From the sequence record MN047793.1: a stretch of 64,000 bases of DNA; one strand, given 5' to 3'. Position numbers and translations under genes: made by a program. Under the pieces are notes generated by a model. That model was not told the DNA's origin, did no database searches, and saw only the letters and a program-made list of their open reading frames with translations. This document shows, piece by piece, positions 3,000 through 21,536 of the stretch (positions are counted from its first letter, which is position 1; every line of letters begins with the position of its first letter).

Positions 3000-3579
3000 C
3001 GATACAATTCCTAAAAATCTTATTTAGAATTCTATAAGACTTCAAAGTATATCTGATGTCTTCTAATGCGTTGTGTTCTTTACGTGGAGGGAATCCAATT
3101 TTCTCAAAAAGTTCATCCGAATCAAATGCACCGACTGCTAACAGCCCAACGGGAAATGAATCTAATGCTCTATGTGAAATTTTTAATTTGATATCAAATT
3201 TACGTAGTAATGCCTTAAAGAATGGTTTATCAAAACTTACTACATTATGACCCAACAGTGTTATAGCACTATTAATATCAAAATGCTTCATTATAAACTC
3301 TACGATAAGAATGGTAGCCTCTTCTTCATCAATTCCATTTTCTTCTAAGTATTCTTTACTTAGTCCATGGATTTCTTCAGCCTTAACATTCCACTGCGAC
3401 TCACCATTCCATTTAATTTCTAGGTATAGTGAGTCAATTTCCGCGTATGTAGTAACATCACTTACGATAAGGCCAATGGATACCATTTGGTACCCATCTG
3501 AGGGATCATCACCAAATGCCATACCACTGGTTTCACAATCAATAGCTAAAATCTTGCTGAAATGACTTCCCCTGCTCAT
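2992..3579 (-). CDS. DEDDh 3'-5' exonuclease (DnaQ-like superfamily)
   Basis: ExoI AIDCETSG, ExoII GHNVVSFD, ExoIII HNALEDI. Confidence 0.85.
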   Translation of the reverse strand: MSRGSHFSKILAIDCETSGMAFGDDPSDGYQMVSIGLIVSDVTTYAEIDSLYLEIKWNGESQWNVKAEEIHGLSKEYLEENGIDEEEATILIVEFIMKHFDINSAITLLGHNVVSFDKPFFKALLRKFDIKLKISHRALDSFPVGLLAVGAFDSDELFEKIGFPPRKEHNALEDIRYTLKSYRILNKIFRNCIDG

Positions 3580-4277
3580 TCGCTTGCTCGGTTACGTAAA
3601 ATGCGTAATACAACGGCTTGTAATTCAGAGGCTGCAACAAAAGTATTACCCTCTACATTATTGATTACTTGGGTAACATTCTCCGGTTCTAGTGGTTGTT
3701 CGGATGCATGATCTGAAGTTATAATCTTCGCCTGTCCTTCTCTCACAACACGAATGACCACACCGTTTTGGTGTTTTACAAAGAGTGCTTCATTATCAAA
3801 GCGTACATCGGTAACAAATGCGATATCTACGCCAGATGTTAGAATGGTGGATTGTAAAGACTTGATCCAAATATCGTCTCGAATGCCCTTTCGACATGCT
3901 TCGGTTCCCAATTGCTGGGCCATCTGTCGAGGCGACATATTCCAATAACTAATATTTTCTTCTTTCAATTTGCGATCATAAAATGATTCGAGTGGTACAT
4001 TGAAAATTACCGATGCTGCTCGCTTCAGGTTATCAGCAAATGCGAAGCATTCTACTTTTAATCCATGATCTTTCTGTAGAGAAAGACGGACCATGTTTGC
4101 TACCGTATCCTTGCCTGCCCCTGCTAGACCATTGATACCAATAATTACTGGTATATTATATACAGGTGGAGCGTATTGACCCATTGCAATTGTTTCTGGG
4201 TTGACTTCTGAAAAAACTGACATAAACTTATCCTTGCTGTTGTAACCCATTATATTTGAGTTACAACAGCAAGTCAA
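3576..4277 (-). CDS. Deoxynucleoside monophosphate kinase (T4 gp1-like); true start probably one of the downstream ATGs
   Basis: GINGLAGAGKDT P-loop, FADNLK, RQMAQQLGTE, VTDVRFDNE, HASE. Confidence 0.85.
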   Translation of the reverse strand: MTCCCNSNIMGYNSKDKFMSVFSEVNPETIAMGQYAPPVYNIPVIIGINGLAGAGKDTVANMVRLSLQKDHGLKVECFAFADNLKRAASVIFNVPLESFYDRKLKEENISYWNMSPRQMAQQLGTEACRKGIRDDIWIKSLQSTILTSGVDIAFVTDVRFDNEALFVKHQNGVVIRVVREGQAKIITSDHASEQPLEPENVTQVINNVEGNTFVAASELQAVVLRILRNRASE

Positions 4278-5042: not shown

Positions 5043-5480
5043 ATGAAAAAGCACACCGCGATCCCTCTAATTACAGAGCCACACCCGGAAGGCTATAATG
5101 GCTACCCGTTTATTACTCTTATCCGTTACAACGATGTAAACACTATTAACATTATCGACAATGTGGTGAATAAACAGATTATTGGGTACGTCCTAGATTT
5201 GTGTGCTCCAGCAGGACTTGATGAACAGGCAGTAGTTTCTATTGCAGAAGATTGGTTTTATAGTGACCGACAAAAACGATATCCACTATCCGTAGAATTT
5301 TCTAGACGTGAGTTATCTGGAGTAATGGCCCCGATTCTTCGATGCTATCCTACTGAATATGTAACACGAGTGATTGGACCCCTTCCAGAATATAAAATGG
5401 GTGGCGTCTTTAAGACAAAGAAGAAACGTAAGAAATCAATTCCTGCCGACATTGATTTCGTAGACCGCCGATTTAAATAA
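5043..5480 (+). CDS. Hypothetical protein
   Basis: 145-aa ORF on the opposite strand filling the gap; CTAAATA at 5005..5011 upstream. Confidence 0.65.
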   Translation: MKKHTAIPLITEPHPEGYNGYPFITLIRYNDVNTINIIDNVVNKQIIGYVLDLCAPAGLDEQAVVSIAEDWFYSDRQKRYPLSVEFSRRELSGVMAPILRCYPTEYVTRVIGPLPEYKMGGVFKTKKKRKKSIPADIDFVDRRFK

Positions 5481-5859
5481 GAGTCTTAAGTACGCTGTAC
5501 TTTACCGATTCTGTAGCGTTTTTGAATTCATCTTTTACGGTATCAGTTTGGTCAATCATACTGGTACCTTCGTCGGTTAATTGACCAGTATCATCAATTA
5601 GATTATTATTGACAAGAGTCTCTTGTCCAGCGTCAGTAACTCCTGCACGCTTTCCTGTATCATCTATATTAACTAGACCCATACTACGAAGCTGCTGGCG
5701 GGCCTGTATGACGTTCTCTGAGCCGGTAGTGGTGTCGTATGCAGTCTCAGGCGTAGGGGCTGCATAGATGCACACAAGGACGTTCTTCTGAGTGTCAGTA
5801 AGTCTGGCAGCGGGTGGAGCTTGTGGCGGTAATGCCGCCAGTTCTTTTAGAAATTTCAC
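5473..5859 (-). CDS. Hypothetical protein, possible winged-helix fold
   Basis: LTDTQKNVL...LRSMGLV...VTDAGQE pattern; resembles 55913..56398. Confidence 0.55.
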   Translation of the reverse strand: MKFLKELAALPPQAPPAARLTDTQKNVLVCIYAAPTPETAYDTTTGSENVIQARQQLRSMGLVNIDDTGKRAGVTDAGQETLVNNNLIDDTGQLTDEGTSMIDQTDTVKDEFKNATESVKYSVLKTLI

Positions 5860-6422
5860 AATATTTCAGCCTTGATGAGATGTAGTTGTAACACGATAAG
5901 AAGAGCGTAAGGAATTGCATGCGATTTTCGTAGATCACTAGGGTCACGTTTCGTATACAATTCTTTTATTACTGCTTTCTTGTTCTTAGCATATTTATCC
6001 ACTAGCTTGATTTTATTAGGTCTGATGATCGCTAAACAATCTGCTAATTCAGATACTGAACTAGGTTTAATTTTCTGGATAGTTTCAAAATGCTTGGCTA
6101 AATGAAATAGCTTCTCAACCACTTCAGGGTCTTCTAACAGAGTCCAGTCAGGCTCTATCTTTAGTAGTTCCCGAATCTCATCTTTAGATTCAAAGTTGTC
6201 CAGAATGTTAAGGTTCAACATGTCGATTTTAAAGAAGCCATGGTCTTGGGCTTCTTTATAAGGAATGGCTGCTAAGCCACTTACTTTATCTACCGGAATA
6301 TTCTGAAAGTATACCCCAACATTATGCTTCTTAAGTTCTCCATTCTCCACAATCGATGCGTGAGTGATCTTAAATAAGCTGTCCGGTTTAAATTTTGGGG
6401 TAATGTCGATGTCGATATCCAT
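5856..6422 (-). CDS. dnaE: DNA polymerase III alpha (DnaE)-like C-terminal half: palm acidic motif plus fingers remnant
   Basis: Starts MDIDIDI (PDxDxD), KHNVGVYF (HAAGVVI), GFFKIDMLNL (KFDFLGL), IKPSSVSELADCLAIIRP, RKSHAIPYA (NKSHAAAYA). Confidence 0.8.
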   Translation of the reverse strand: MDIDIDITPKFKPDSLFKITHASIVENGELKKHNVGVYFQNIPVDKVSGLAAIPYKEAQDHGFFKIDMLNLNILDNFESKDEIRELLKIEPDWTLLEDPEVVEKLFHLAKHFETIQKIKPSSVSELADCLAIIRPNKIKLVDKYAKNKKAVIKELYTKRDPSDLRKSHAIPYALLIVLQLHLIKAEIL

Positions 6423-6453
6423 TGGCGCAGTCTACCAGACTTCCAAATGTAAA

Positions 6454-7134
6454 TCAATATCCGTGCATGTTTTTGATGATGGTAATTAATTCATCAGTGT
6501 TAGTTGCCAACTGTATCATCTTGGTGTACTTAAATCTATGCTCTTCCATAGTTTTAAGAATCTCATTGGCGGTTCGCTTAAGGTTCATAACCTCTTCTAC
6601 TACTTGGCTACGTGTCCATCCATTTAATTTTTTAGAAGCTTCGATAATTGGAAATTCATTCAAACTTTTCGGCTTAGGATTCATACCAAGATAACGTACT
6701 ACCTCATCAAACTTAGCGTTAATTAGACTAATATTTTCGGGGATTAAGTTGACAGCCCAATCAGAATGTAACGACTTCAATATATTCATCGCATCAGACT
6801 TAGCAATATTGATATCAGTCAAATCGATCTGATACTTTTTTTGTCTCATAGTTCGACTAGAGATAAACTCGCGTACTGGAGTTGCCTTTTCTAAGGCATC
6901 CAATTGGGTGGCTGCGTCTTCCTTAGTATCCACAGTAGATCGCTTTACACTTCTAACCTTCGTTCGCCAATCGTTCCATCTGGCACGTGATTCGAATGAA
7001 AGCTCATTATCTTCCAATTGTGTCCAGTCACTAGTGGATAACAATAGCTGTCGCTTTGCTATTACTTCTGCCCATTCTCTATCGATGTATTCCGACGTTT
7101 TTTCTAAACGACGAATTTTAATTTTCTCAACCAT
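6454..7134 (-). CDS. Tail fibre assembly chaperone-like protein
   Basis: LLLSTSDWTQLEDN...WNDWRTKVRSV matches the SDWTQLPD...W..YR..LRD motif of phage tail assembly chaperones; lies downstream of the fibre cluster. Confidence 0.65.
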   Translation of the reverse strand: MVEKIKIRRLEKTSEYIDREWAEVIAKRQLLLSTSDWTQLEDNELSFESRARWNDWRTKVRSVKRSTVDTKEDAATQLDALEKATPVREFISSRTMRQKKYQIDLTDINIAKSDAMNILKSLHSDWAVNLIPENISLINAKFDEVVRYLGMNPKPKSLNEFPIIEASKKLNGWTRSQVVEEVMNLKRTANEILKTMEEHRFKYTKMIQLATNTDELITIIKNMHGY

Positions 7135-7301
7135 TAGATTGAATCAAATTCTTTTAAGGATTGACCGATCATAGTGAAGTCAAATCCACTATCATCCACT
7201 TCAAATACTTTATTTCCCTGACGGGCCATATCTTCAATATTAACCGGCTTTACTGAATAGCCAACAATTACATCATCACTCGTTCTAACGAAAATAAACA
7301 T
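7134..7301 (-). CDS. Small hypothetical protein (55 aa, not in ORF track)
   Basis: MFIFVRTSDDVIVGYSVKP...EFDSI; GAGGA SD; TAATG coupling to next gene; CTAAATA at 7325..7331. Confidence 0.7.
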   Translation of the reverse strand: MFIFVRTSDDVIVGYSVKPVNIEDMARQGNKVFEVDDSGFDFTMIGQSLKEFDSI

Positions 7302-7350
7302 ACAAGTTCCTCAACTTATATGTCTATTTAGAGTGTCAAAAAATGATGTA

Positions 7351-7827
7351 TTACTGTGCAGATTGGTTGGTTCCAGAGCTTCCACCGCCGCCACCGCCGC
7401 CACCGCCGCCACCGCCACTACTTGCAGCAGCTACTACATAACGGTTAATTGAAACGTTATATGTCATACCACCAGTAACTACCTGACCAGCAGCATCAGT
7501 CACTTGATAATTCACACGTAATGTTCCACTAATAGTTAATGAGCACATATTAGATGATGTAAACCCGTAACCGAATTGTGGGGAAGCGCCACCGCCACCT
7601 GGGAATGCTGACATATTCAATGTCGCATTCGATGCAGTAGGAACTTGTGGATATGAAAATGTCGTGGTGTATGGTGCTTGCCCACCACTAATATTCAAGT
7701 TACAGAAATCTGTTGCAGTACCAGAACCACATGATGCAGAATATGATTGATTTTCTGTGAATGCTGCACAATCACCACTCATGTTTACTACAAGTTGTGG
7801 GATGATATTATTACATACAATTGCCAT
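7351..7827 (-). CDS. Cys-containing, Gly-tailed putative virion protein
   Basis: Beta-rich S/T/G/N composition, C-terminal poly-Gly; own AATAAATA motif at 7848..7855. Confidence 0.55.
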   Translation of the reverse strand: MAIVCNNIIPQLVVNMSGDCAAFTENQSYSASCGSGTATDFCNLNISGGQAPYTTTFSYPQVPTASNATLNMSAFPGGGGASPQFGYGFTSSNMCSLTISGTLRVNYQVTDAAGQVVTGGMTYNVSINRYVVAAASSGGGGGGGGGGGGSSGTNQSAQ

Positions 7828-7853
7828 AATTTACTCTTAATTCTCAATATTTA

Positions 7854-9440
7854 TTAGCAAGTACCCAGTACCTGACCGGTTTCGTTATCCACAATAGTAT
7901 AGTCACTAGCAATCTGCCAAGTGCGGTTATTACCGCTACTACTTACTAATACTGGAGTCATATTAATAGTAATCGTGAATGTACGGGAGCCTACAGTAAT
8001 AGTATCAGTAACTGTTTGTGCTGTTGTACCATAAACTTGACGATTATACGGAGTTTCACCTACACCATTTAATGTAACTTTCAGGTTTAATTGAATAGCT
8101 GGTGTAGCGTTATAATATTGTACATTTCCTCTTACTGGATTCAATGCGATAGTCTGCGTAGACACAAACGATGTGGCATTATTACAAGCACAGTATGACG
8201 TACACTGGTTATAATCACCATTACCACCTGATGAGTTGGTGAATGTGGTGAATGTTCCGCCAGGAACAGATGACGCTACGAAACCTGTGCAGTATCCACC
8301 ATTGAAGCCGTTTAGCGGTGGAGTACCCGGCATATTACGACATGCATAACGCGGTGCGGCTGTCGGAGTTGGTGTCGGAGTTGCTGGTTGCGGTGCTGGG
8401 CGACAAATCTGAAGGCTTGATTGGTTCGGGGGAATGAACGCTTGAGTTGTGTCTAATACCGGGCCAGCTGTCTCGTTTGCCGTAGATGCACATACGTTGG
8501 AGAAATCACCACTACGAGTGAATGTAAATGAATATCCAGTAGCTGGTGCAGGATGATTCAAGGAAACTGTATAACAAATCTGTGCGCCAGGAAGAACTTG
8601 ACCAGTAGGATTAGCAGTAATAGTCGTAGAGTAAACTAATTGAGTTACTGACGGCGTTAACGATGGTGCTGGTGTACCAGTACGAGTCATTGTTGGTGTT
8701 GGTGTCGGTGATACACCTGCCGTTGGTGTTACTGATGGAGTTGGTGATACTACTGGCGTAGATGTACGTGTCGGCGTCATCGTTGGAGTTGGTGATGGGG
8801 CCGGAGTAGCAGAAGGAATTGGCAATTGTGAGCCTAAATTCTTATTACCCTTAATACCTACGATCAGGTAGTTGGCACATCCAAATACAGCACTGGTGCC
8901 ACCTTCAGGATTATAGAACATAGTTACATTTGCTTGGTCATCCGTTACACACTGTAGGTATGTAAAGCTGGTGTCCATAACGAATGGCGTTACAATCCAT
9001 GCACATTCATCATAATCAAACACATAACCATGCTGGTTTTGTGGTTTAGGTAATTGGCTACCATGTGCAATTACGCCCCAGTTAGATGCAATATCTCCTA
9101 CCATACCTAATGCTAGCCATGATGAACCCGTCCAAGCATATAATGATTCTTGAGTAATATTGTACCAAAGTTGTCCCTGAACTGGCTTTGTCAATAGACG
9201 TTTAGTAGTATCAGCAATAAATGATGTTGAGGTTAAGTCAGGATTACCCGGTAATAGGGGGTTTTCTTTGCACGCAAAATTCTCCAGCAAGTGGAGAAAG
9301 TTAGCATTCATATCACGACCATATTCTAGTCGCTTTCTACCAAACAACGAAAGGTCAGTTGACGAATTATCAACGTTGGTCTCCGATACTACAATAGGAG
9401 CTTTATTCTTGTCGGTATATTTAACGGTATATTCTGTCAT
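7854..9440 (-). CDS. Fibre-like paralog 1: conserved N-module, Pro/Thr linker, Ig-like domain, second linker, Cys-rich tip
   Basis: Shared motifs GRKRLEYG, LLENFAC, GQLWYN, NWGVIAHG, ANYLIVGI; PTPTPT linkers. Confidence 0.65.
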   Translation of the reverse strand: MTEYTVKYTDKNKAPIVVSETNVDNSSTDLSLFGRKRLEYGRDMNANFLHLLENFACKENPLLPGNPDLTSTSFIADTTKRLLTKPVQGQLWYNITQESLYAWTGSSWLALGMVGDIASNWGVIAHGSQLPKPQNQHGYVFDYDECAWIVTPFVMDTSFTYLQCVTDDQANVTMFYNPEGGTSAVFGCANYLIVGIKGNKNLGSQLPIPSATPAPSPTPTMTPTRTSTPVVSPTPSVTPTAGVSPTPTPTMTRTGTPAPSLTPSVTQLVYSTTITANPTGQVLPGAQICYTVSLNHPAPATGYSFTFTRSGDFSNVCASTANETAGPVLDTTQAFIPPNQSSLQICRPAPQPATPTPTPTAAPRYACRNMPGTPPLNGFNGGYCTGFVASSVPGGTFTTFTNSSGGNGDYNQCTSYCACNNATSFVSTQTIALNPVRGNVQYYNATPAIQLNLKVTLNGVGETPYNRQVYGTTAQTVTDTITVGSRTFTITINMTPVLVSSSGNNRTWQIASDYTIVDNETGQVLGTC

Positions 9441-9462
9441 GGTTTGATCTTGTTAATAAGTC

Positions 9463-9470
9463 TATTTATA
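9463..9470 (-). promoter_or_regulatory. Late promoter TATAAATA
   Basis: Exact consensus 23 nt upstream of ATG 9440. Confidence 0.75.
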
Positions 9471-9480
9471 CTTACGCATT

Positions 9481-10113
9481 TCAGCCAATATTAGTTGGTG
9501 TCATTGGTACACCATTATTGTAATTACCACGAATACCAATAATCAAATAATTTGCTAAACCTGGGAGAGCATTACTCGTTCCAGATAATCTATATTGCAT
9601 AGTAACTAGTGCTGTAGAATCTGTACCACAGCTAATTAATGACGGCTTTCCTACTACACCAGCAGGAGATACCATCCATATACAATCATCGTACTCATAA
9701 GCTAGTCCAGTAATCGGACTAACCGGGCGAGGTAGACGCTGCCCATGCATTATACTTCCCCAGTTGGCAGCATAATTTTCTCTGAGAGGTAGTGGTTTCC
9801 ATTCTAGTCCGTCCCAATAATAAGTCATACTACGCGTACTATTAAACCAAAACTGACCAATCGTGGGCTTAGTTAATTGCTGTAATGATGTACGCGAAAT
9901 ATCTGGTACAGATTTCATGAAATCCGCACTCGGCTTTTCTGGACATGCGAAATTTTCTAGAATATTAAGAAGATTGCGATTAACACTCTCTCCATATTCT
10001 GGGGCAATTCGCCCCGCTAAAGTAACGTCAAGGCTTGAATCATCAAATTCTTGTTCGTTAACAGTGATAGATTGGATATTTCTATCCGTATGTTTGATGT
10101 TATATTCGGCCAT
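9481..10113 (-). CDS. Fibre-like paralog 2: conserved N-module only
   Basis: Same N-module motifs; ends right after GIRGNYNNG with no linker or tip. Confidence 0.65.
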   Translation of the reverse strand: MAEYNIKHTDRNIQSITVNEQEFDDSSLDVTLAGRIAPEYGESVNRNLLNILENFACPEKPSADFMKSVPDISRTSLQQLTKPTIGQFWFNSTRSMTYYWDGLEWKPLPLRENYAANWGSIMHGQRLPRPVSPITGLAYEYDDCIWMVSPAGVVGKPSLISCGTDSTALVTMQYRLSGTSNALPGLANYLIIGIRGNYNNGVPMTPTNIG

Positions 10114-10131
10114 AGTGATATTTATTCCCTA

Positions 10132-11424
10132 TTAAACGGGGGTTCCCGCCTGACCGTACAAGGAAATAGTTCCAGTAACAATCTGTGATGAATCATTCTT
10201 TCTACGAATCTGGAAATTTACATACATGTTCACAACGTCGCGAGTACTTGCAATCGACCATGACAAACCATTGCCTCCCATGTCATACCATACGGCACCG
10301 TTACCCGGTGTGTTAGGTCCTGCTGGAGTACTAAATGATGAGCTTGCAGGAAATTGAGCATCGAAGCTTGATACGAATGCCAATTCGAATTCGGATGGAC
10401 TTCCGCTGAGAAGCCATTGGGTTTTAGATAGCGATCCTCCGCGATTTTGTGAGTAACCTACCGTTCCGTTATTTCTAAATCCAACAGCTGCGCCAACTTG
10501 TGCGCCAGTGTTTACCTGTGACGCAGCAGAGTATTCACCACCTACAATGATATTAGATAGTGGCGGCTTGGGCGTCGGTGTAGGACTGGCGGGTGGGGTA
10601 CTCGATGGTGCTGGTGTATTGGATGGCACTGGAGTATTGGATGGCACTGGAGTATTGGATACTACCGGCGTTGGTGACATCGTTGAGGTTGGCGTCGGAG
10701 TTGGTGCTGCTGCCGCAGAACGTGTAATAGATGGTGTGACTGATAACGTTGGAGTAGGCGTTACCGTCGCCGTCATCGTAGGAGTAACGGTAGGAGTAGG
10801 TGATGGTGCCGGTACTGCTGGATATGGACCACTTACGGCATTGCCACCAATACCGATGATTAAGTAGTTTGCGGTACCATTATGGAATTCCGTTCCACCA
10901 GAATACCGATATCTAATCGTAACCGTAGCATTATCATCTGTAGTACAGTTTAAGAAACCTACTTTTCCTAGAATAATCGATGGGGCTACCGACCAAATAC
11001 ATTCATCGTAATCGAACACTCTACCTGTGATCGGACTAACTGGTTTCGGAATTTGTTGTCCATGAATTACCTGTCCCCAGTTGGCAGCATATGCTTCACG
11101 GGATGGTAATTGAATCCACTCAGTACCTGACCAGTGGAACATATTACCTCGTGAAGTATTGTACCAAAATTGCCCAACCGTTGGGTTAGTTAACTGACTT
11201 TTACTTGTTACAGAAAGATCAGGAGAAATTGGATTACTTTGACTAAGTTCCGGACATGCGAAATTCTCAAGGATATTTAATAAGTCCTCGTTTAGAATTT
11301 CACCGTATTCGCGCCTAATCTTCCCTAACAATGTAACATCTAGGTCAGTATCGTTTACACGTTTACCCGGAACAGTAATTGGTGGGAAGCTACTATCAGT
11401 CTTGTTTACAATATAATCGGCCAT
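10132..11424 (-). CDS. Fibre-like paralog 3: N-module, Pro/Thr linker, beta-rich tip
   Basis: Shared N-module; TPVPSN repeats; tip similar to that of 14893..16146. Confidence 0.65.
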
Positions 11425-11439
11425 ATCAATATTTACCTA

Positions 11440-12732
11440 TTAGCACCGGCCGATACCAGTGTTGAAGCTGTAATTTGCTGATAATGTACCATTTGCTGCA
11501 TTATTATCACCACTACTCTTATACCAATTAGCGTTCACAACCATTACGTGGTTTACGCCATTTAGGTTGAAGTTGAAGTTGAACGTACCTGATGAAGTGT
11601 TACTCACTGATGATGGAATACGAGCGAACAATTCAACGTCGCCAGTCGTCGCACCATTAGATGCTGATACTCTAACCACGAATCGAACCGATGGGAATGT
11701 ATTCGCCATATTCGTAAACACTCGGATAACACTACCACTACATGAGTGAGAATTAGGGCCACCAGCCGCACAATAACATGCAGATGGTGTTCCTACCTGA
11801 CTGCTTCTACGTAGCGGGGTCCATACCAATTGGGTGTCACCATATCCCATACAGAATGTAGATACCGTATAGCAGTATGTAATTGGTGCAGGAGTCGGTG
11901 TTGAACTTGGTACCGGTGTAGGACTTGGTACTGGCGTATTCGAAATCTGCGGTGTTGGTGACGGTACTGGTGTTGGACTGCGAGTTAGTGTAGGGGTAGG
12001 CGTAATAGTTGCCGTAATAGTTGCCGTCACCGTTGGCGTCGGAGATGGTGTTGACGTTTGTGTCGGTGCTGGTGTCGATGAAGGTGATGGGGTTGGGGTT
12101 GGTGACGGCATTAATGGCGGTACTACTACACCATTATTATGATTCCCATCAATACCAATAATCAAGTAGTTTGCGATACCGGGTACAATCATTTCTGTAT
12201 TGGCATAGCGATAATGCATCGTCACTTGGGATGACGCATTAGTATTACAATTCATTAAATCGATTGTGCCGTTAATTGCTGCTGGAGATACTGACCAAAT
12301 ACATTCATTATAGTCAAATACTCTACCTTGAAAGTTAACTGGCTTCGGTAACTGTTGACCATTCATAACTTGGCCCCAGTTAGCAGCATAGGCTCCACGA
12401 TTTGGTATAGGATTCCATCGAGTACCATCATAGTAGTACATCAATTCTCGTGATGAATTATACCAAAATTGCCCTATGGTAGGGTTATTCAGCTGAGTCT
12501 TTGTAACACTTAATAAATCTGGAGTAGCAGTGAAAATACCTGTTGTTGCAGGGTCTTCGGGACAAGAGAAATTTTCAAGCAGATTTAGCAAGTCTTCATT
12601 AACGCCTTCTCCATAATTCTGTAGGATTCTACCAAACAAAGTTACGTCGTATGAGGTCTCATCGACTGTATCTTCAGATACAGTCGTGGTAGGTACGTTG
12701 ATATCAGTGCGTCTAACAATATAATCAGTCAT
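11440..12732 (-). CDS. Fibre-like paralog 4: N-module, Pro/Thr linker, Cys-rich tip
   Basis: Shared N-module; tip begins YCYTVSTFC...[15 protein letters not shown]. Confidence 0.65.
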
Positions 12733-12739
12733 ATACTAA

Positions 12740-14860
12740 TTAGGTTCCTGAAGGTGTTGGTGTCACCGACGTAGTTCTAGTCACTGATGGTGTTGGTGTT
12801 ACTGGAGTACTTTTCGTCACGGACGGTGTTGGTGTCGGTGTTGGTGTCACCGGAATATTAGGTACAATGAATGCTACTTCCACTGATTCGCGGTTAGCTG
12901 GAAGAGTCTGCACGGTATCACCATTAGTAAACGCGGTACCAGTATAGTTGATGATGGACATTACCGTATTCATTGAATCAGCAACATTCAGAGCTAGAAC
13001 TGTATTATTACGTACGGCAATTGAATTTAATGCGGTAGTAGCAAATCGTCCAATCAGAGATGTAGTAGCTTCAACTACTAACTGTCCGGCATTGATGGTA
13101 ATACAATCAAATGCGGTACGTGTTGGAGCAGCGGTAGGCGGATATGCTATGAATAGCTTTCCTGTCACATTATCAAATGTCATGGTGGCAACTGTATCAG
13201 ACGCAATAGTAGAGTAATCTAATGTGTCTACTAAAGTGAAGCCCACACCATCTTCAAATCTGTATGCAATCAATTCATTATCGCCATTGATTACCGTAAT
13301 GAATTCTGAATCATATGCGGCTACTGAAATTGAGGGTGATGACACACTGAGGGTGTTAGAGTCTGCAACAAATGTGGTTCCATTAAACGTATGAGTGGTG
13401 AATATGTATGTGAATGGGTCCGCTTCGGTATTGTTTACCATCATCACTTTACCATTACCTAATTTATGCACAGAATGAACGTCACGACCATCGTATTTGA
13501 TGTTGGCTACCTCATTAAATGTGCTACCAGTAAATGTAAACGCACTCAGTTTAGTTTCGATGTTACTTACAGCGGTAGTGGTATTAATTGAGGCAACATA
13601 GATGAAATTGTCGTCCACTGTCAATTCACGTGAACGATATTCACTGCTGGAACCATCAATAGCATTGATGTTATATACGCCAGACCCCAAGTTTACGCCG
13701 AATGCAAATAAGCTGTTTTCTGTAGTAGAAACATAATATTGTCCAAACATCTTACCTACTTTCGGTTGAATTGGAGCAACCTGATAGTATGCAGGATTAT
13801 ACATGGATGTTGATGTATAAGATTGGTTGAATAATTTTGTTGTCCCTAACTTACGAACATAGTACGCTTCGTCGCCATAATCCGGGTTTAGCGGACGCAG
13901 TGCTACCGCAAAAATATCACCGTTATTTGGCACTAACGATGGGGTTACCGTTATGCTAGGCGTTGGAGTAAATGTAGTTGTAGGAGTAGGCGTAGGTGTT
14001 GTCGTTGATGTTGGGGTTAATGTCATCGACGCAGTTACTGTTGGCCCTGGGGTTCCTGTTGGTGATGGAGTCGGTGAAGCTTCACGTGTTGGTGATGGTG
14101 TAATAGTACGGGTCACTGTCGGCGTAGGCGTAACAGTAAATGTTGGGGTGATCGTTGGGGTGATCGTTGGGGTCGCAGAACGTGTTGGTGTTGGTGTTGC
14201 TGTAGCTACTGGAGTAGATGTTGGGGCCGCTCCTGATTGGCATCCGATGGTGCCACGATTTTCGTTATCACGAATACCGATAATTTGATAGTTAGCAAAA
14301 CCATTATTCAATGCAGTCTGGCCTTCAAATCGGAATTGCATTGTTACACGTGCAATAGGGTCACTAAAGCAATGAACAAAGTCTACTTCCTGGGGCAGGT
14401 TGAATGGCGATACGGTCCATGCACATTCATCAAGTGAAAAATTATATCCATCAGATGAAATTGGCATTGGAATAAATTGTCCATGGCCGATAACTCCAGA
14501 ATTACCAGCAACATCATTTACCGTACTAAGAGCACGCCATGTACCAAGGGATGTACGCACGAATGGTTTGTTCTGTGTACTGTTGTACCAAATCTGTCCT
14601 GTAGTAGGATTTTCTAATAAGTTACCAAATGCAGTGTTTAAGTTTGGAGTTCCTGGGTTACCCGGTTCTTCTGGGCACGCATAATGCTCAAGAACATGTA
14701 GAATGTTCTCGTTAAAGATTTCACCATACTCCAATCGGGTCTTACCAATAAGAGCAATGTCTAATTGGTCAGTAATTAATGCCGATTTCTGGATTTGGAT
14801 AGTTCCTTTGTCCAGATTGGTGTAATAGATCACGTAACTATTGTCTGCGCAGTTTGCCAT
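12740..14860 (-). CDS. Fibre-like paralog 5: N-module, Pro/Thr linker, large beta-rich (propeller-like) domain, terminal Pro/Thr tail
   Basis: Shared N-module; about 350-aa beta-strand-rich domain; GATAAATA at 14882..14889. Confidence 0.6.
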
Positions 14861-14892
14861 TTTAAATTCCGAATATCGTCTTATTTATCCCG

Positions 14893-16146
14893 TTACTGAA
14901 CGGTTACTTGTAACACAATCACACCGTTACCCATAACGAAATTATCCGCGTCGCGTCGCACTTGTACATTAAGGGTTAATGTATACGTTCCTGGGGACGT
15001 TGAAGAGTTTTGAATCTCCCACGTTCTATTGATTGAACAATTTAGCCATGTATCCAAAAACCCTGTAGGAGTTACATTACCTGATACGCGGGTCGCTCTA
15101 ACTGAATAATTTGCCGGGTCATCATTGATCAACCATCGGGTAGGAATGTTAAACCCATTCGAATCGTATACTACCACAAGCTGAGTATTTAAAATAGAAT
15201 ATCCTACCTTGAGAGTAGACCCTACCCCCGTGGTACGTGCCACAGTTTGATTACTTAAATCAACTGTAATAGGTGCTGGACGACTTGGTGTAATGGTTGG
15301 GGTGATCGTTGGTGTTGGGGTCGGTGTCGGTGTTACTGATCGGGTCTGTGACGGCACAGGTGTCCCACTACGGGTTACCGTTGGTGTTGGTGTGGCACTA
15401 CGGGTCTGTCCGGGTGTCCTCGTTAGTGTGGGTGTTGGGGACCCTGTAACCGATGGCGTCTTTGTTGGGGTCAACGTTGGAGTAAACGTAGGCGTTGGGG
15501 TTAATCCCGGAATATTTGGGGTCGGGAACGGAACGCCATGATTACGGGTGTCTCTAATTCCAATAATCTGATAATTGGCTAAGCCGTTAAAGAGTGTTGG
15601 ACTTCCAGCACGTCTATATTGAGTGAATACCCTAGCATTAGAATCGGTATAACATGAAAGAAATATAATGCGTTGAGGTTCGGCAAATCCGAATGGGGAA
15701 ACTACCCACGAACATTCAGAATATGGGTACACGTAACCGTCAATAGAACTTACTGGTCGTGGTAATTGTTGACCGTGAGCAATAACACCAGAATTCCCAG
15801 CTACTGTGTCATTCTGTGCAAGAGCCATCCATACAGCACCATTCCATGCATGTGGAGTGTTCGTAGTTTTATTATACCAAATCTGACCTACCGTCGGCTT
15901 AGACAATTGTGGTACATACACTTGGGACAAATCTGGAGTATTAGGCTTATCTGCGTCTTCTCGTGCAGCAAAGTGCTCAAGCAGATGAACGATGTTAGTA
16001 TTGAATACTTCACCATACTCCAGGCGGTTTTTACCAATAAACACGATATCACCGGCAGTGGTAACTACCGATGACCGGGGCACGACGATTGGGGTTTTAT
16101 CTTCGTCTGTGTAATAAACTTGGTAGCGAAAGCTCGGATTACTCAT
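14893..16146 (-). CDS. Fibre-like paralog 6: N-module, Pro/Thr linker, beta-rich tip
   Basis: Shared N-module; tip WLINDDPANYSVRATRVSG...VQVRRDAD. Confidence 0.65.
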   Translation of the reverse strand: MSNPSFRYQVYYTDEDKTPIVVPRSSVVTTAGDIVFIGKNRLEYGEVFNTNIVHLLEHFAAREDADKPNTPDLSQVYVPQLSKPTVGQIWYNKTTNTPHAWNGAVWMALAQNDTVAGNSGVIAHGQQLPRPVSSIDGYVYPYSECSWVVSPFGFAEPQRIIFLSCYTDSNARVFTQYRRAGSPTLFNGLANYQIIGIRDTRNHGVPFPTPNIPGLTPTPTFTPTLTPTKTPSVTGSPTPTLTRTPGQTRSATPTPTVTRSGTPVPSQTRSVTPTPTPTPTITPTITPSRPAPITVDLSNQTVARTTGVGSTLKVGYSILNTQLVVVYDSNGFNIPTRWLINDDPANYSVRATRVSGNVTPTGFLDTWLNCSINRTWEIQNSSTSPGTYTLTLNVQVRRDADNFVMGNGVIVLQVTVQ

Positions 16147-16172
16147 TAAATATTAGGTCTTTAAGATTCTAA

Positions 16173-16180
16173 TATTTATA
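16173..16180 (-). promoter_or_regulatory. Late promoter TATAAATA at the head of the fibre array
   Basis: Exact consensus 27 nt upstream of ATG 16146. Confidence 0.75.
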
Positions 16181-16183
16181 CAG

Positions 16184-16873
16184 CTAGATTTTTAATTCAC
16201 TAACGATCTTTCGCATCGTATTTAATGACTTAGGGTCCTTCTTAAAGTTTTCTGCCCACGTATTGTGATCGATTACCGTTCCGATCAAAATTTTTTGTTC
16301 AGGAGAAGCTTCCGTTCTCATGTGTGAGATGAATCCTTTACTAATAAGCAGAATCCATGGACTTAACTTTCTAGCTACTACTAGTCTCATTATATCCGAC
16401 GACTCCATATGCTCAAACACTTCATCCAATTCACATTCGAAATGGTTGGATAAATCATACATGGTATCGATAGTTATTGATGCCATCTCTATGGGCGTCT
16501 TACTTGCATCAAAATGATGTAGATAGTCCGTGTAGATATCCATACTCGTCCACTGGGTTGGCATTATACCTTTATCAATCATAAACATAATGTAATGCTT
16601 ACGATCTGGGATACCTACTCGACTACAGAATTTACAAAATTCTACGAATGCATTGAAGTATTTGGACTCCATGAATACGTCCTGGCCTTTAACTGCACGT
16701 CCCTGAGCATTCATCCATGCTTTATAACAGTAGTATGCAGACTTACCTTTATTAGTCTGCATATATTCGTGACGTGTTTTTGCCTCACATTTATGCTTAT
16801 CCAGCCTTACCTGAGTGGTGAGCTTTTTGCAGCAATGTGGACATTCAAAGAAAGGTTTAACGTGTCCCGTCAT
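16184..16873 (-). CDS. Hypothetical protein with N-terminal C2H2/C2HC-type zinc finger
   Basis: FECPHCCKKLTTQVRLDKHKC. Confidence 0.65.
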   Translation of the reverse strand: MTGHVKPFFECPHCCKKLTTQVRLDKHKCEAKTRHEYMQTNKGKSAYYCYKAWMNAQGRAVKGQDVFMESKYFNAFVEFCKFCSRVGIPDRKHYIMFMIDKGIMPTQWTSMDIYTDYLHHFDASKTPIEMASITIDTMYDLSNHFECELDEVFEHMESSDIMRLVVARKLSPWILLISKGFISHMRTEASPEQKILIGTVIDHNTWAENFKKDPKSLNTMRKIVSELKI

Positions 16874-17322
16874 TTTAGTTCAGTTTTTATCTTTTTGATT
16901 TGCTCTTTATCATACCCAAGGTCTTCTGCCATGTCTAGAACATCTTCCAATGTCAACCGTGGCAGATATCCAATAGCCTCAGACTTACTAATATCATAAT
17001 ACTGTGCTATAGCGCTAACTGATACGGCAGCTTTTTTATCTTTACCCTTTTTCTTGATCCAAGAATAACGTTTAGATTTGCTGTCAGAGCATGCCGTCAG
17101 AAGTAGGTACATTAGTTTTGGGTGCTTATGCAACTTAAAGACCAAGGGGTTCACAATACTATTGATCAATTGCAACTGCTTTGGGCTTCCACTAGAAGCC
17201 CATCGCATGGTAAGTAGAGGAACAAACCCTTTTTGCTGTTCCAACGAAAGATTCTCGATAAAGGAGAAATTACCCTTATCCATTTCCTTCAACGTCTCAA
17301 AAATGTCTAATTTCTCGCTCAT
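16870..17322 (-). CDS. gp62: Clamp loader small subunit (gp62-like)
   Basis: Position two genes after gp44; F.PLLTMRWAS, HPKLMY, YSWIKKK, IAQYYDISKSEA pattern. Confidence 0.65.
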   Translation of the reverse strand: MSEKLDIFETLKEMDKGNFSFIENLSLEQQKGFVPLLTMRWASSGSPKQLQLINSIVNPLVFKLHKHPKLMYLLLTACSDSKSKRYSWIKKKGKDKKAAVSVSAIAQYYDISKSEAIGYLPRLTLEDVLDMAEDLGYDKEQIKKIKTELK

Positions 17323-17633
17323 CGTTCTTTAGGAATTGATAGTTTAGCATTACAGAACTTGCAGGATATATGAGTTCCATTATGAATCAATGAATTCTTC
17401 GGATGAATACATTCTTTCACCATGGCCTGTCGCATCACAAACACCTTATCTAGAATTTCCTGACGGGCATATTGAAGAGCAATAATCTGCTCTTCTAGTG
17501 GACTCATTTCTTGAACCACTTGCTCGATCTTCTTCTGCCGTCTACTCCAAGACAACTTCTCATTCTTGTCTGTGAAGTTAGCAACATTCTTAAGATCGCG
17601 TTCAATTTGTTCCGGCGTCAATGGTGTACTCAT
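17319..17633 (-). CDS. Hypothetical coiled-coil protein with C-terminal zinc-binding motif
   Basis: CIHP...CKFC; translationally coupled on both sides. Confidence 0.6.
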   Translation of the reverse strand: MSTPLTPEQIERDLKNVANFTDKNEKLSWSRRQKKIEQVVQEMSPLEEQIIALQYARQEILDKVFVMRQAMVKECIHPKNSLIHNGTHISCKFCNAKLSIPKER

Positions 17634-18568
17634 TATACATTACCCAGTCGGATAAACATAGCAGCAGCATTAATTTCGGGATCAGCAACTTGAGAATGAC
17701 GGAACAAATGGTCACCGATAATAACCACGCCTTGACTCCACTTATCATGATCGCCCTTAAACTTTCCAAGTTCATGCAAGTTTTCGTAAAGGAAACGATA
17801 TACTTCATCCCATTCATCATCGCTAACAACTGAACTAACTGCCTCACGGATACCTTTATAGTTATCCCCTTCAATCATTTCAACGATCTTAAGTTCAAAG
17901 TCAGCGGATTCATCGTCAGATGCTTCTTCAAATGGCTTCAATCGTCCATCGAAAGAGTTCTTATCGAGAGTTTCTAATACTTTACGGAAATCTGGATAAC
18001 ATGCGTCAACGTATGCTTCAACGTCATCAAGGTTTGCTTTGACCTTTTCTTTAGATAAGACGACTGCTGCACGCTCTAGCATTTGGTCTTTATCCATAGA
18101 CTTATATTCAATAACTTGTGTACGTGAGTCACTAAGCTCAGGAATAAGCTTCTGGGGCTTATTGCACGTTAGTACAAATCTGGCGTTATCGGAATATTCT
18201 TCCATCATAGATTTTAGTGTACCTTGCGCATTCGGGGTTAAACCATCAGCCTCATCCAATAGAACGATTTTGATATCACCCATAGCCATAGTAGAGATGA
18301 AGTTCTTTACCTTAGTGCGTACGGTTTCGATGTTATTATCATCGGATGCGTTTAATTTTAAGAAATCTACATCATCAACTTCAAGAAGTGATTTGAGTAG
18401 TAATGCAAGGGATGTTTTACCTGTACCGCGATGTCCCTTTAGAAGAACATTAGGGATACTTTTGTCCTCGACCCAGCGTTCGATCAGTTGGCGGTGTGCT
18501 TCATCCTTAAAAATATACTCATCTAGAGTTTTTGGACGATATTTGATGGACCATAGTTGTTTTGCCAT
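17633..18568 (-). CDS. gp44: Clamp loader large subunit (gp44/RFC-type AAA+ ATPase)
   Basis: KYRPKTL, GHRGTGKTS, LNASDD, LLDEADGL, FVLTCN. Confidence 0.92.
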   Translation of the reverse strand: MAKQLWSIKYRPKTLDEYIFKDEAHRQLIERWVEDKSIPNVLLKGHRGTGKTSLALLLKSLLEVDDVDFLKLNASDDNNIETVRTKVKNFISTMAMGDIKIVLLDEADGLTPNAQGTLKSMMEEYSDNARFVLTCNKPQKLIPELSDSRTQVIEYKSMDKDQMLERAAVVLSKEKVKANLDDVEAYVDACYPDFRKVLETLDKNSFDGRLKPFEEASDDESADFELKIVEMIEGDNYKGIREAVSSVVSDDEWDEVYRFLYENLHELGKFKGDHDKWSQGVVIIGDHLFRHSQVADPEINAAAMFIRLGNV

Positions 18569-18586
18569 TTAAAATAATACCTCAAT

Positions 18587-18624
18587 GTATTGGGGTATTA
18601 TACATAAGATTTCGACAAAATCAA
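18587..18624 (-). promoter_or_regulatory. Possible sigma70-type promoter for the clamp loader operon
   Basis: TTGATT-N16-TATAAT on the minus strand, GAGG SD downstream. Confidence 0.45.
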
Positions 18625-19430
18625 GCCTCGGGAGTATCCTCAGTCTTTGAATGAGCTACTTTCTTTTCAATGTAGCTTCTTAAAGAATCCATATCCACCT
18701 TTTGCTTCTTTTCTTCCATTTCGAATAAGGCCTTCTCTGCCGCCTTTTCTTCCTTTCTGATACGAATAGCAATATTAGTGGCAATTGTCAAGGCAATTGC
18801 AAGAGGATCAAATACTGATATTAAAATTATAATGAACCAGAATACGGCAGTGTTAGGGTTCTTACCCATTACTTCTGCAATAAACATGATCGGTCCAACC
18901 TTAGCTTTTACGTTAACTTGTTGAGTTTTTAATGTCTGTAACTCTGGAGTGATTTCAGCTAATCGCGAGTCTATAACCTTACGTTCTTCCGCAAAGCTCT
19001 TTACCAGACGTTCCTTTGCTCTAACATAGTTCGGACCAACATCAGCAATTTGTTTATCTATTTGAACTTTACGCTCTTGTAATTGCTTAGTTTCCGCGTC
19101 ATACAATTCTATCTTTTGCTGCATTTCGGCTAATGGTATAGTGTCTTTTTGGTATGCTGCACTAAGGAATCCGAAGATTCCCATTGACGTAATTATCATT
19201 AGTACGAATATGGCTGATATCAAATACAGCTTTAGTGTCATACCAATACTCTTAGCATAACGATATAAAAACGATGTTGCTACTAGCTTACCTGCTTCCA
19301 GTGACGCACCCATAATGATTACTGGAATTAATGCTCCCGTAAACAAATGCGCCAATCCATATACCGAAAAGAAAGCTGCTGACGCGGCAATAGCCAACGT
19401 CACCAGTACTAGTACAACAATAAAAGCCAT
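18621..19430 (-). CDS. Multi-pass membrane protein with coiled-coil loop
   Basis: Three N-terminal hydrophobic helices, coiled coil, fourth helix AVFWFIIILISVFDP. Confidence 0.7.
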   Translation of the reverse strand: MAFIVVLVLVTLAIAASAAFFSVYGLAHLFTGALIPVIIMGASLEAGKLVATSFLYRYAKSIGMTLKLYLISAIFVLMIITSMGIFGFLSAAYQKDTIPLAEMQQKIELYDAETKQLQERKVQIDKQIADVGPNYVRAKERLVKSFAEERKVIDSRLAEITPELQTLKTQQVNVKAKVGPIMFIAEVMGKNPNTAVFWFIIILISVFDPLAIALTIATNIAIRIRKEEKAAEKALFEMEEKKQKVDMDSLRSYIEKKVAHSKTEDTPEA

Positions 19431-19741
19431 TACATAATGTCCTTGGGTTTTTCCGAAGTGACTAAAGCTACGTAACTCTCATCAGTACGCCATAGCTTCT
19501 TTCCGTCTACGTCTACTGCCAAAGTCCACTTTAGTGGGTCAATTAAAATGTAGTCACCTACTGCAACTTCTGTCACTTCTGGACCAATCTTAACTGCTCT
19601 GCCCCAACGAGCCTTATTAGCGTCAAAGTCGTTACCGGCTAACGTAAAGCCCCATTCAGTTTCATTACGGAAAAAACCGTCACGAGTAGCTTGACAGAAA
19701 TCAAAGGCAATGCTTTTCTTAAGTAGTGTATATTCGGTCAT
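19430..19741 (-). CDS. GroES-like co-chaperonin (divergent copy)
   Basis: WGRAVKIGPEVTEVAVGDYILI matches the GroES G.V.AVG....V.VGD.V motif. Confidence 0.65.
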   Translation of the reverse strand: MTEYTLLKKSIAFDFCQATRDGFFRNETEWGFTLAGNDFDANKARWGRAVKIGPEVTEVAVGDYILIDPLKWTLAVDVDGKKLWRTDESYVALVTSEKPKDIM

Positions 19742-20079
19742 ACTGTTCCCTTTACAATTCTACGCTTAGGTTGACCCTCTGCAACGATTACAGTTTCAGG
19801 AAGTACTTCATGCGGCTGGGCCTCTTTCTGCATAGCCACATCACTTGCGCGACGGCGACGGTCTTCTTCCATTGCGGCTCGCACAGATGCTTCGTTCGTC
19901 TGCTGTTTAGCTAGAATTTCATCAGCTTTCTTTCGTGAACCACGGCGACGCTTTTTATCAATGAATCGCTCGCGCTGAGTTACAGTGTCTGGGGTTGGTG
20001 CATTCATAATTCTATTCTTGATATCCATTAAATCGAAATCAACAATTTCTCCACGAACGCTTTTTACTTTTCTACTCAT
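19738..20079 (-). CDS. Hypothetical protein
   Basis: 113-aa charged ORF; AATAAATA at 20104..20111. Confidence 0.6.
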   Translation of the reverse strand: MSRKVKSVRGEIVDFDLMDIKNRIMNAPTPDTVTQRERFIDKKRRRGSRKKADEILAKQQTNEASVRAAMEEDRRRRASDVAMQKEAQPHEVLPETVIVAEGQPKRRIVKGTV

Positions 20080-20109
20080 TTGGTTATATTCCTAAACTAG
20101 GGTTATTTA

Positions 20110-20658
20110 TTATCTGAAAAATTCGCTTAACTCTAAGCCGTATTTGATAGAATCTACATCATGCAGTCCAATAAGATATAAACAATATGAGCAACATGAA
20201 CTTCCACGTCCAGTTCCCCATACCACATTATTTCTCTCAAACTCTTCAACTATGTAGATGACCACCGTTAGAATATCAACTAGATCATATTCTTTGTATA
20301 AAGCAAGTTCTTCATCTACTCGCTCCATACGCTCATCGATATCTTCCTGTGAAAAATCATCTGATGATTCTAATTCATTTAGAAGTTTAGATAGTATGTA
20401 TTTCTTAACATCGATAGTCTTATACTTATCTGGAACTATCCATGCCGTATCGTATTCACCAAATTCCGTCTTTTTGCCTAGTTGGTCTTTTGGATTGAGA
20501 CTATTAAACTGTCTAATATCTTTGGATAATTCGGTGATAAAAATAGAACTGTCCAGCGTATTGCCGGACAGTACATAGTCATACAATGCTTCTGGTTCAA
20601 AAGAAGAATCTCCGTCATACCAGAGAATTCTTCCATTGAGTTTTGTTGCATTATTCAT
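20110..20658 (-). CDS. dnaE: DNA polymerase III alpha (DnaE)-like N-terminal half
   Basis: ERVDEELALY...YIVEEFERNNVVWGTGRGSSCCSYCLYLIGLHDVDSIKYGLELSEFFR matches DnaE RL..EL..I...G.GRGS..GSLV.Y.LGIT.VDP.KY.LLFERFL; no PHP domain. Confidence 0.8.
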   Translation of the reverse strand: MNNATKLNGRILWYDGDSSFEPEALYDYVLSGNTLDSSIFITELSKDIRQFNSLNPKDQLGKKTEFGEYDTAWIVPDKYKTIDVKKYILSKLLNELESSDDFSQEDIDERMERVDEELALYKEYDLVDILTVVIYIVEEFERNNVVWGTGRGSSCCSYCLYLIGLHDVDSIKYGLELSEFFR

Positions 20659-21047: not shown

Positions 21048-21536
21048 TTAAGGTAAAATGTCACCGACTGTACAGTCACGTAGCATTTTCGTATAGTTAT
21101 CTGTTGGCGAAATACATACCCAATGATGTGGGCCTGCCGTATGGCAGAGCATTACGTTCTTATTCATACTTGGTGTATGGATAGTTCCGTAAGTATTATA
21201 GTCAACGACGTTTACTACATTTTTTGTTACTTTATTATGTTTATGATCAAAAAGGAATGCTGAGAAATCCCCACGGGTTAGTTCCGAGATTTCGATAATA
21301 TCGATCTGGGATGTTTCGGGTGAATAAATCAGAATATTCCAGTCTGCTGGGGCTTCTACCACATAGCCACCTACGTTAAAAGCGATTACCGGTGTGGTAA
21401 TTTCTTCCAACATCACTAGATCGTTTAACATAAAGTCCCGTTCGTTAAGATTGAGGACCCAAAAATGATCTGTTGATAGTGGTGTATCGATACTATCAAT
21501 TAGTATCGGGTAGGATTTTTCATCGGAGATTACCAT
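21048..21536 (-). CDS. Hypothetical protein, possible degenerate Hint (intein-like) fold
   Basis: VGGYVVEAPADWNILI...IEISELTRGDF resembles Hint G..I..T.DH.FL...A.EL..GD; catalytic residues absent. Confidence 0.4.
   Translation of the reverse strand: MVISDEKSYPILIDSIDTPLSTDHFWVLNLNERDFMLNDLVMLEEITTPVIAFNVGGYVVEAPADWNILIYSPETSQIDIIEISELTRGDFSAFLFDHKHNKVTKNVVNVVDYNTYGTIHTPSMNKNVMLCHTAGPHHWVCISPTDNYTKMLRDCTVGDILP

Follow-up and report, generated by a model that had tools for sequence, protein, structure and literature searches.

A minimal DNA polymerase III alpha core split between two distant genes of Xanthomonas phage Xoo-sp13

Analysis of a 64-kb stretch of the genome of Xanthomonas phage Xoo-sp13 (record MN047793.1, 309,023 bp; position 1 of this stretch, hereafter the window, is position 124,001 of the record) revealed two genes which together encode a minimal catalytic core of a C-family DNA polymerase of the polymerase III (Pol III) alpha type. 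The core is split immediately ahead of the strand carrying the DxD motif. The two products, hereafter the N-half and the C-half, together comprise 370 amino acids (aa; 182 + 188), and 13.7 kb separates their genes, which lie on the same strand. The split enzyme is real and probably functional. The reading favoured here, with moderate confidence, is that the two proteins are pieces of one minimal nucleotidyltransferase, associated non-covalently, and that this enzyme is a probable accessory DNA polymerase of a T4-type replisome and not the main replicase.

The existence of such an enzyme is not a discovery of this study, since it was already published for these phages by Iyer, Anantharaman, Krishnan, Burroughs and Aravind (Viruses 2021, PMC7824862). 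These authors described a split minimal Pol III alpha in group 2.2 jumbo phages, in which two distant genes encode an N-terminal NTP-binding part and a C-terminal part binding Mg and the template, without any other Pol III domains and accompanied by a family B polymerase and a replisome of the T4 type. They suggested cooperation in the synthesis of one strand or in repair, and regarded the enzyme as a model of ancestral Pol III. An earlier reading of the window, made from the sequence alone (hereafter the sequence-only reading), had cautioned that similar proteins might already be known, and this caution was justified. In addition, PHROG families 11127 and 11778 are both labelled 'DNA polymerase', and the same name is given to one or both halves in many GenBank records. 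The present analysis adds single-chain and permuted relatives, the derived position of fusions in the tree and a conserved convergent open reading frame (ORF), none of which is mentioned in the main text of Iyer et al., where Xoo-sp13 is not mentioned either; it also adds a conserved block of replication genes for each half and an intact family B polymerase encoded elsewhere in the genome. The main text of the PA5oct omics paper does not mention the split enzyme.

Identification of the two halves

The coordinates (Table 1) and end sequences that the sequence-only reading had assigned to the two ORFs proved correct, and both ORFs lie on the minus strand. The proposed search of each half against DnaE gave a clear match for the N-half and a weak one, at the sequence level, for the C-half.

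For the N-half, a relationship to Pol III alpha is clear. The protein is matched by PF07733 (DNA_pol3_alpha, the Pol III alpha NTPase domain) with an E-value of 2.3e-9 and 37.7 bits, against a cut-off of 23.9, and by phrog_11127 'DNA polymerase' with an E-value of 1.3e-54. In an hhalign comparison using a profile of 37 homologues, residues 82-182 were aligned with residues 286-393 of E. coli DnaE (probability 94.6%, E 6.8e-8), and the same profile recovered E. coli DnaE among PDB entries (E 1.9e-4). This region corresponds to the helical N-terminal palm, with the GRGS triphosphate-binding loop at 150-153 and the end at EFFR. The C-terminal stretch of the protein reads ...VVWGTGRGSSCCSY...YGLELSEFFR-stop, and the last residues of the 182-aa product are ...VVWGTGRGSSCCSYCLYLIGLHDVDSIKYGLELSEFFR. 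Residues 1-80 (window positions ~20419..20658) form a small conserved alpha/beta domain, confidently modelled and carrying a conserved RILWYDGDS motif, for which Pfam and Foldseek searches detected no relatives, PF02811 included. This may be a docking domain.

The C-half starts with MDIDIDI and contains FFKIDMLNL, IIRPNK and RKSHAIPYA. It is matched by phrog_11778 'DNA polymerase' (E 1.6e-75) and by phrog_405 (E 1.7e-4). Its AlphaFold2 (AF2) model has a mean predicted local distance difference test score (pLDDT) of 90.5 and a predicted template modelling score of 0.73. When this model was compared with the PDB using Foldseek, each of the best 14 matches was a structure of Pol III alpha or DnaE (probability 0.87-1.0), and later matches had probabilities of at most 0.08, except for one 'DNA polymerase' entry at 0.30. 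The assignment of the C-half to Pol III alpha is thus based on its motifs, on PHROG and sub-threshold Pfam matches and on the fold search, and its identity as a piece of Pol III alpha is settled by the predicted structure.

The record MN047793 annotates the C-half as Xoosp13_218, a 'hypothetical protein', and has no CDS for the N-half, which falls in the gap between Xoosp13_234 and _235. In the closest metagenomic relative, both the N-half and a nearby 162-aa ORF, which also lacks a CDS in the record, have gene calls. The N-half gene starts within TAATG, where its start codon overlaps the stop codon of the gene upstream, and it terminates in tandem TAA TAA stops.

Distribution of the active site and loss of other domains

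The motifs of E. coli DnaE are divided between the two proteins. In the N-half, GRGS (361-364 in DnaE) is found at position 150, and FERF (388-391) is represented by LSEF at 177-180, with E179 at the position of R390. The C-half holds the DxDxD strand (DIDID 2-6, with D2, D4 and D6, for DFDVD 401-405), the third carboxylate within KID (65-67, with K65 and D67, for KFD 553-555), and reduced fingers with RPNK (134-137, for RPGP at 639) and KSHAIPYA (166-173, for KSHSAAYA at 758). The three C-family carboxylates, D401, D403 and D555 in E. coli, are therefore D2, D4 and D67 of the C-half. The active site is incomplete in either half taken alone, and the catalytic motifs of the two are complementary. 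The sequence-only reading had described a minimal core broken at the palm ahead of the DxD, with KID as the third acidic motif, KSHA..YA as the fingers motif and a Glu in place of the FERF arginine. The mapping upholds each of these observations, the last in an ungapped alignment, and the break is further confirmed by the conservation of the split point described below.

The N-half ends two residues past the equivalent of DnaE F391, and the C-half starts one residue ahead of the equivalent of D401, which leaves no room for intein halves. Only 59 residues separate D6 from K65, in comparison with 148 between the DxD strand and the third carboxylate in E. coli DnaE, indicating that the thumb is gone; in the C-half model this interval consists of a beta-hairpin and a loop, with no helical thumb. 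Similarly, the spacing between the RPxP/K and KSH motifs is 29 residues versus 116 in E. coli DnaE, and only 15 residues follow KSHAIPYA. About 120 of roughly 350 residues of the fingers are kept, RPNK and KSHAIPYA being invariant and PF17657 scoring below its threshold. A Pfam scan of both halves found no PHP (PF02811), clamp-binding, HhH, OB, intein or other further domain, so the description of the pair as 370 aa devoid of these elements holds by both Pfam and end mapping.

Distribution and conservation of the pair

A tblastn search of isolate phage records found the N-half in 102 and the C-half in 96 of them. In isolate phages the halves always occupy separate places on one strand, with 11 to 182 kb between them. 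Phages with both halves include Rak2-like, 121Q-like and PA5oct-like phages, Atu_ph07, Stenotrophomonas phages and the 141-kb Alishewanella phage Slicko01. In a large protein collection, 229 relatives of the N-half were detected (114-207 aa among those listed, nearly all of them 175-207) and 1447 of the C-half (186-203 aa for the 120 listed), and many N-half/C-half pairs were found on the same contigs. A HMMER search with the C-half profile against 1.84 billion representatives of 50%-identity clusters, accepting E-values up to 0.001, found 398 clusters, and the group occurs in phages of 141 to 490 kb.

The ends of the proteins are conserved. All 37 aligned N-halves end at EFFR with no more than three residues beyond, and all 34 aligned C-halves start with MDIDID. 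Residues G148, G150, R151, G152 and S153 are invariant in the former set, and M1, D2, D4, D6, K65, D67, R134, P135, R165, H168 and Y172 in the latter. Among the best 150 of the 398 cluster representatives, nearly all complete proteins have the DxDx[DE] motif inside their first 18 residues and hence share the break. Since the same point recurs across these diverse representatives, the position of the break is not due to chance. Conservation of the split point, which had been proposed as a check in the sequence-only reading, is thereby established.

The closest relative of Xoo-sp13, a metagenomic contig of 326 kb, shares its layout and has about 14 kb between the halves. The C-half is 87.8% identical to its counterpart there, with dN (nonsynonymous substitutions per site) of 0.085-0.099 and a maximum-likelihood (ML) dN/dS ratio, omega, of 0.02; the N-half is 74.7% identical, with dN of 0.17-0.18 and ML omega of 0.09. 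The synonymous rate, dS, is saturated even against this relative, and the omega values are rough upper-level indicators only. The C-half is better conserved than the clamp loader (79% identity to the closest relative). Both genes are under purifying selection, with dN/dS far below 1.

Natural fusions of the two halves

The strongest new evidence that the halves work as one enzyme is provided by rare natural fusions in both orders, which argue for a joint function. They are metagenomic proteins found among the C-half cluster representatives (loci L011, L019 and L012). In one of them, P0316 (375 aa), the N-half profile matches residues 7-181 (probability 99.4%, E 8.6e-22) and the C-half profile residues 191-374 (E 1.3e-34), with the junction between the two parts reading ...EFIKDNKEGIYNIADFDID.... 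Two further proteins, P0390 and P0391, each of 376 aa and 78-81% identical to P0316, come from other samples, which shows that P0316 is not a one-off gene call. These N-C fusions from three samples have an 11-residue linker. A shorter N-C fusion, P0381 (336 aa), does not contain the N-terminal domain of about 80 residues. Finally, P0387 (398 aa) is circularly permuted, with the C-half at 6-195 followed by the GKGSS...EWFFK segment at about 270-310, and a gene for an AAA_25 helicase-like protein comes after it.

An ML phylogenetic tree of 115 C-halves was midpoint-rooted, and many of its deep branches are weak. The P0316 clade is nested inside stand-alone forms with strong support (SH-aLRT 96). 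The fused state requires three changes on this tree, of which at least two are forced by strongly supported branches; P0381 and P0387 are on long, weakly placed branches. The nesting of the P0316 clade among split forms suggests that the split looks ancestral in the family as sampled, not necessarily at its ultimate origin, and that the 375-376-aa fusions look secondary. A stand-alone near relative, on contig L013, has no N-half within 10 kb. A 200-aa gene overlapping the start of this C-half was considered as a candidate N-half and rejected (hhalign probability 0.4%).

Proposed mechanism and role

Xoo-sp13 is a T4-like jumbo myovirus, and its gene content fits the group described by Iyer et al.: a family B polymerase, a gp32-type single-stranded DNA-binding protein (SSB), a UvsW helicase, a clamp loader and a gp23-type capsid protein. 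Genes annotated in or near the window encode a clamp loader, a UvsW-type helicase, RecA/UvsX, SSB, primase/helicase, terminase, major capsid protein and portal. The complete family B polymerase, Xoosp13_313, is encoded outside the window; it has a Pfam match, and its Exo I motif and motifs A, B and C are intact, in agreement with the remark in the sequence-only reading that T4-type replisomes normally use a family B polymerase.

According to the favoured reading, the N-half would supply the helical N-terminal palm and the GRGS loop for holding the incoming triphosphate, and the C-half would supply the beta-strands with the carboxylates D2, D4 and D67, predicted to bind two metals, together with cut-down fingers (RPxK, KSHxxxYA) contacting the nascent base pair. 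The assembled Pol-beta-type palm would then add nucleotides to a 3'-OH by two-metal chemistry. In DnaE the GRGS loop holds the triphosphate of the incoming nucleotide and lies against the catalytic sheet. The N-half model (pLDDT 84) has low confidence in residues 145-182 (block means 51-74, with the minimum over 150-154), and this stretch is the GRGS part expected to pack on the C-half sheet. The non-covalent heterodimer proposed in the sequence-only reading thus gains indirect support from the fusions in both orders, the shared contigs, the complementary motifs and this low AF2 confidence at the GRGS end of the N-half.

With no thumb, PHP, clamp-binding, HhH or OB parts, the enzyme would probably be distributive or reliant on partner proteins. 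Since the halves are located in conserved replication blocks (see below) and the genome encodes a complete family B polymerase, an accessory role seems most likely, such as primer extension, gap filling or repair. The setting in replication blocks fits an accessory role in the replisome at least as well as a non-replicative one.

Several points weigh against this reading. We infer heterodimer formation from comparative evidence, and catalytic activity, a DNA substrate and the biological role are likewise deduced; no biochemical or genetic study of any member was found in the literature. The equivalent of DnaE R390 is a Glu; a mostly conserved Arg or Lys occurs three positions past E179, at the C-terminus, in the alignment of N-half homologues. 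The pair has neither a thumb nor any other DNA-binding domain, so that synthesis of DNA on a template is not assured. The relationship of the C-half to Pol III alpha is faint at the sequence level: PF17657 reaches 19.9 bits, under the cut-off of 22 (E 4.9e-4), the comparison of the C-half profile with the single E. coli DnaE sequence gave only an hhalign E-value of 0.025, and a search of PDB sequences with this profile returned no match. For the N-half model the top Foldseek match is Pol III alpha, but it is weak (probability 0.69, E 0.14). Finally, the C-half has an ATG of its own, after a 31-nt spacer, preceded by a weak ribosome-binding site with no strong Shine-Dalgarno sequence.

It is unlikely that the pair is the replicase of one strand, with the leading and lagging strands divided between it and the family B enzyme. 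This possibility, one of those offered by Iyer et al. (PMC7824862), would suit the location of both genes inside blocks of replisome genes and the very strong conservation of the C-half. However, thumb, clamp-binding, HhH and OB elements are all missing, and the genome encodes a complete family B polymerase that has an exonuclease of its own. These elements are normally needed for processive synthesis, and T4-type replisomes use a family B polymerase on both strands.

Slightly less likely still is a nucleotidyltransferase that does not copy a template but adds untemplated tails or makes a nucleotide signal or modification. Many enzymes of the Pol-beta fold are not templated polymerases, and this precedent, the retention of the bare Pol-beta-like core only and the replacement of R390 by Glu all speak for such an activity. 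On the other hand, the finger motifs specific to the C family, RPxK and KSHxxxYA, which contact the incoming dNTP and the template, are invariant, and the synteny is with clamp loader, primase and helicase genes, not with genes for defence or modification.

The two proteins could also be independent, or one or both of them could be non-catalytic structural remnants, but this appears improbable: neither has a complete active site, the halves co-occur, catalytic residues are invariant on both sides, and natural fusions exist in both orders, although the genes are far apart in different conserved blocks and the N-half, which is less conserved, contains an additional N-terminal domain. A decaying dnaE pseudogene or an assembly artefact, which the sequence-only reading had named as grounds for abandoning its proposal and which might be suggested by the phage CBB paper (2017), where the N-half (172 aa) was noted as a 'truncated' Pol III alpha, is refuted by the recurrence of both ORFs, with unchanged ends, in about 100 isolates sequenced independently and in hundreds of metagenomic clusters, by dN/dS far below 1 with invariant catalytic residues, and by a start codon of its own in each gene and tandem stops in the N-half.

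A more far-reaching version of the favoured reading can be put forward only tentatively. It holds that the pair is an obligate two-chain, thumb-less polymerase of about 370 aa, the smallest of the C family known, dedicated to accessory work in T4-type replisomes and, in the sampled family, ancestrally split, with single-chain forms, including the permuted one, having arisen by later re-fusion. Such an enzyme might, for example, elongate primers supplied by the primase encoded nearby and then pass them on to the family B polymerase. If so, it would offer a natural model for the modular assembly of a Pol-beta-type palm and would bear on the proposal of Iyer et al. that the enzyme mirrors ancestral Pol III. 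If the pair is active, it would define the minimum of the bacterial-type replicative polymerase fold that still works, with the active site shared by two polypeptides, and would give T4-like replisomes in a large, widespread group of phages a second, unrelated polymerase. The single-chain relatives are convenient constructs for experimental work.

Genomic context and neighbouring genes

Each half belongs to its own conserved block of genes (Table 1). In the first block the N-half is followed by small ORFs, one of which is an annotated chaperonin in 121Q, and then by the gp44-type clamp loader. This arrangement is common to Xoo-sp13, 121Q (gp56 to gp60), Paride (0087 to 0090) and a metagenomic relative (contig L017). 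The second block, observed in 121Q and PA5oct, consists of the C-half, an overlapping convergent small ORF, a structural gene, a primase and a further gene, annotated as a gp41-like helicase in 121Q and as hypothetical in PA5oct. A similar run, ending in a primase/helicase, is present in Slicko01. The order in Xoo-sp13 is N-half, clamp loader, C-half, as in Slicko01.

Table 1. Coordinates of the split polymerase genes and other features of the Xoo-sp13 window
Feature	Position in window	Strand	Length	Basis and remarks
N-half of minimal Pol III alpha	20110..20658	-	182 aa	ORF, PF07733, phrog_11127, hhalign
C-half of minimal Pol III alpha	5856..6422	-	188 aa	ORF, phrog_11778, motifs, AF2/Foldseek
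gp44-type clamp loader	17633..18568	-		record annotation; part of conserved N-half block
Convergent small ORF, candidate associated factor	5043..5480	+	145 aa	phrog_11637, E 1.5e-31; downstream of C-half
DnaQ-like 3'-5' exonuclease	2992..3579	-		PF00929 RNase_T, E 3.4e-6; annotated 'DNA polymerase III epsilon subunit'
Deoxynucleoside monophosphate (dNMP) kinase	3576..4223	-		adjoins DnaQ-like exonuclease gene
Six tandem phrog_15511 paralogues, with tail-fibre-assembly-chaperone-like gene	7854..16146, plus 6454..7134	-	210-706 aa	between halves
ORF with terminal glycine run	7351..7827	-	158 aa
ORF near the N-half	21048..21536	-	162 aa	no CDS in MN047793
Xoosp13_253	40631..43567	-	978 aa

The convergent small ORF encodes a protein with an invariant Trp and a basic C-terminal tail and with no Pfam match. 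It is homologous to the antisense ORFs directly after the C-half in 121Q (gp17) and PA5oct (gp221), and its homologues are also found after the fused genes on L011 and L019. The phrog_11637 protein may be a partner of the polymerase.

The DnaQ-like exonuclease gene is situated 2.3 kb downstream of the C-half in Xoo-sp13, and in 121Q the DnaQ-like gp9 is 4.3 kb from the C-half. Together with the dNMP kinase gene it also occurs after the C-half in the closest relative (L015). This exonuclease could be a putative proofreading partner of the mini polymerase.

Most of the 14 kb between the halves is filled by six tandem phrog_15511 paralogues, which have in common a conserved N-terminal domain about 200 aa long. 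Long Pro/Thr-rich linkers and variable C-terminal parts are present in five of them, and the 210-aa copy is the conserved domain alone. The six paralogues are followed by a gene resembling those for tail-fibre assembly chaperones, with which they look like a fibre or host-range cassette. The Pro/Thr codons of the paralogues account for a local positive GC skew at 8-16 kb. The product of the 158-aa ORF in the same interval has a terminal run of 13 glycines (SSGGGGGGGGGGGGGSSG). The number of promoter-like sites was at the chance level (51 found versus 48 expected).

The 978-aa ORF Xoosp13_253 is found about 1.7 kb downstream of the gene for the primase/helicase, from which a single ORF separates it. 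Xoosp13_253 was considered as a candidate family B polymerase and rejected, as it has no Pfam match at E <=0.01 and the real one is Xoosp13_313.

Comparison with known systems

The Xoo-sp13 pair resembles bacterial DnaE/PolC (E. coli, PDB 2HNH) in the Pol-beta-like palm, the GRGS loop, the three carboxylates and the RPGP-like and KSHxxxYA motifs. However, it consists of 370 aa in two chains, whereas E. coli DnaE has 1160 aa in one, and it lacks the PHP, thumb, beta-binding/HhH, OB and tau-binding parts and has a Glu as the R390 equivalent. Unlike bacterial DnaE, it is not the only polymerase of its genome.

A C-family polymerase made from two distant genes is also known in cyanobacteria, whose DnaE-n and DnaE-c are full length, split within the fingers and rejoined by protein trans-splicing. 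In the phages, by contrast, the cut is ahead of the DxD strand, and in aligned homologues no intein residues are present at the ends, so the phage pieces must stay separate.

Full-length or PHP-containing DnaE proteins of phages, for example Clostridium phages, are represented by phrog_405, phrog_7513 and phrog_13169, against which the N-half scores E-values of 4.4e-11 to 6.9e-4. These profiles are far longer (461-1190 positions), and related proteins of 540-551 aa contain the PHP domain PF02811. These phage DnaE proteins, which do not have the minimal two-gene form, may represent the nearest full-size relatives of the split enzyme. The closest known system is the split Pol III alpha of the group 2.2 jumbo phages described by Iyer et al.: the Xoo-sp13 pair is the same system, and nothing essential differs between them.

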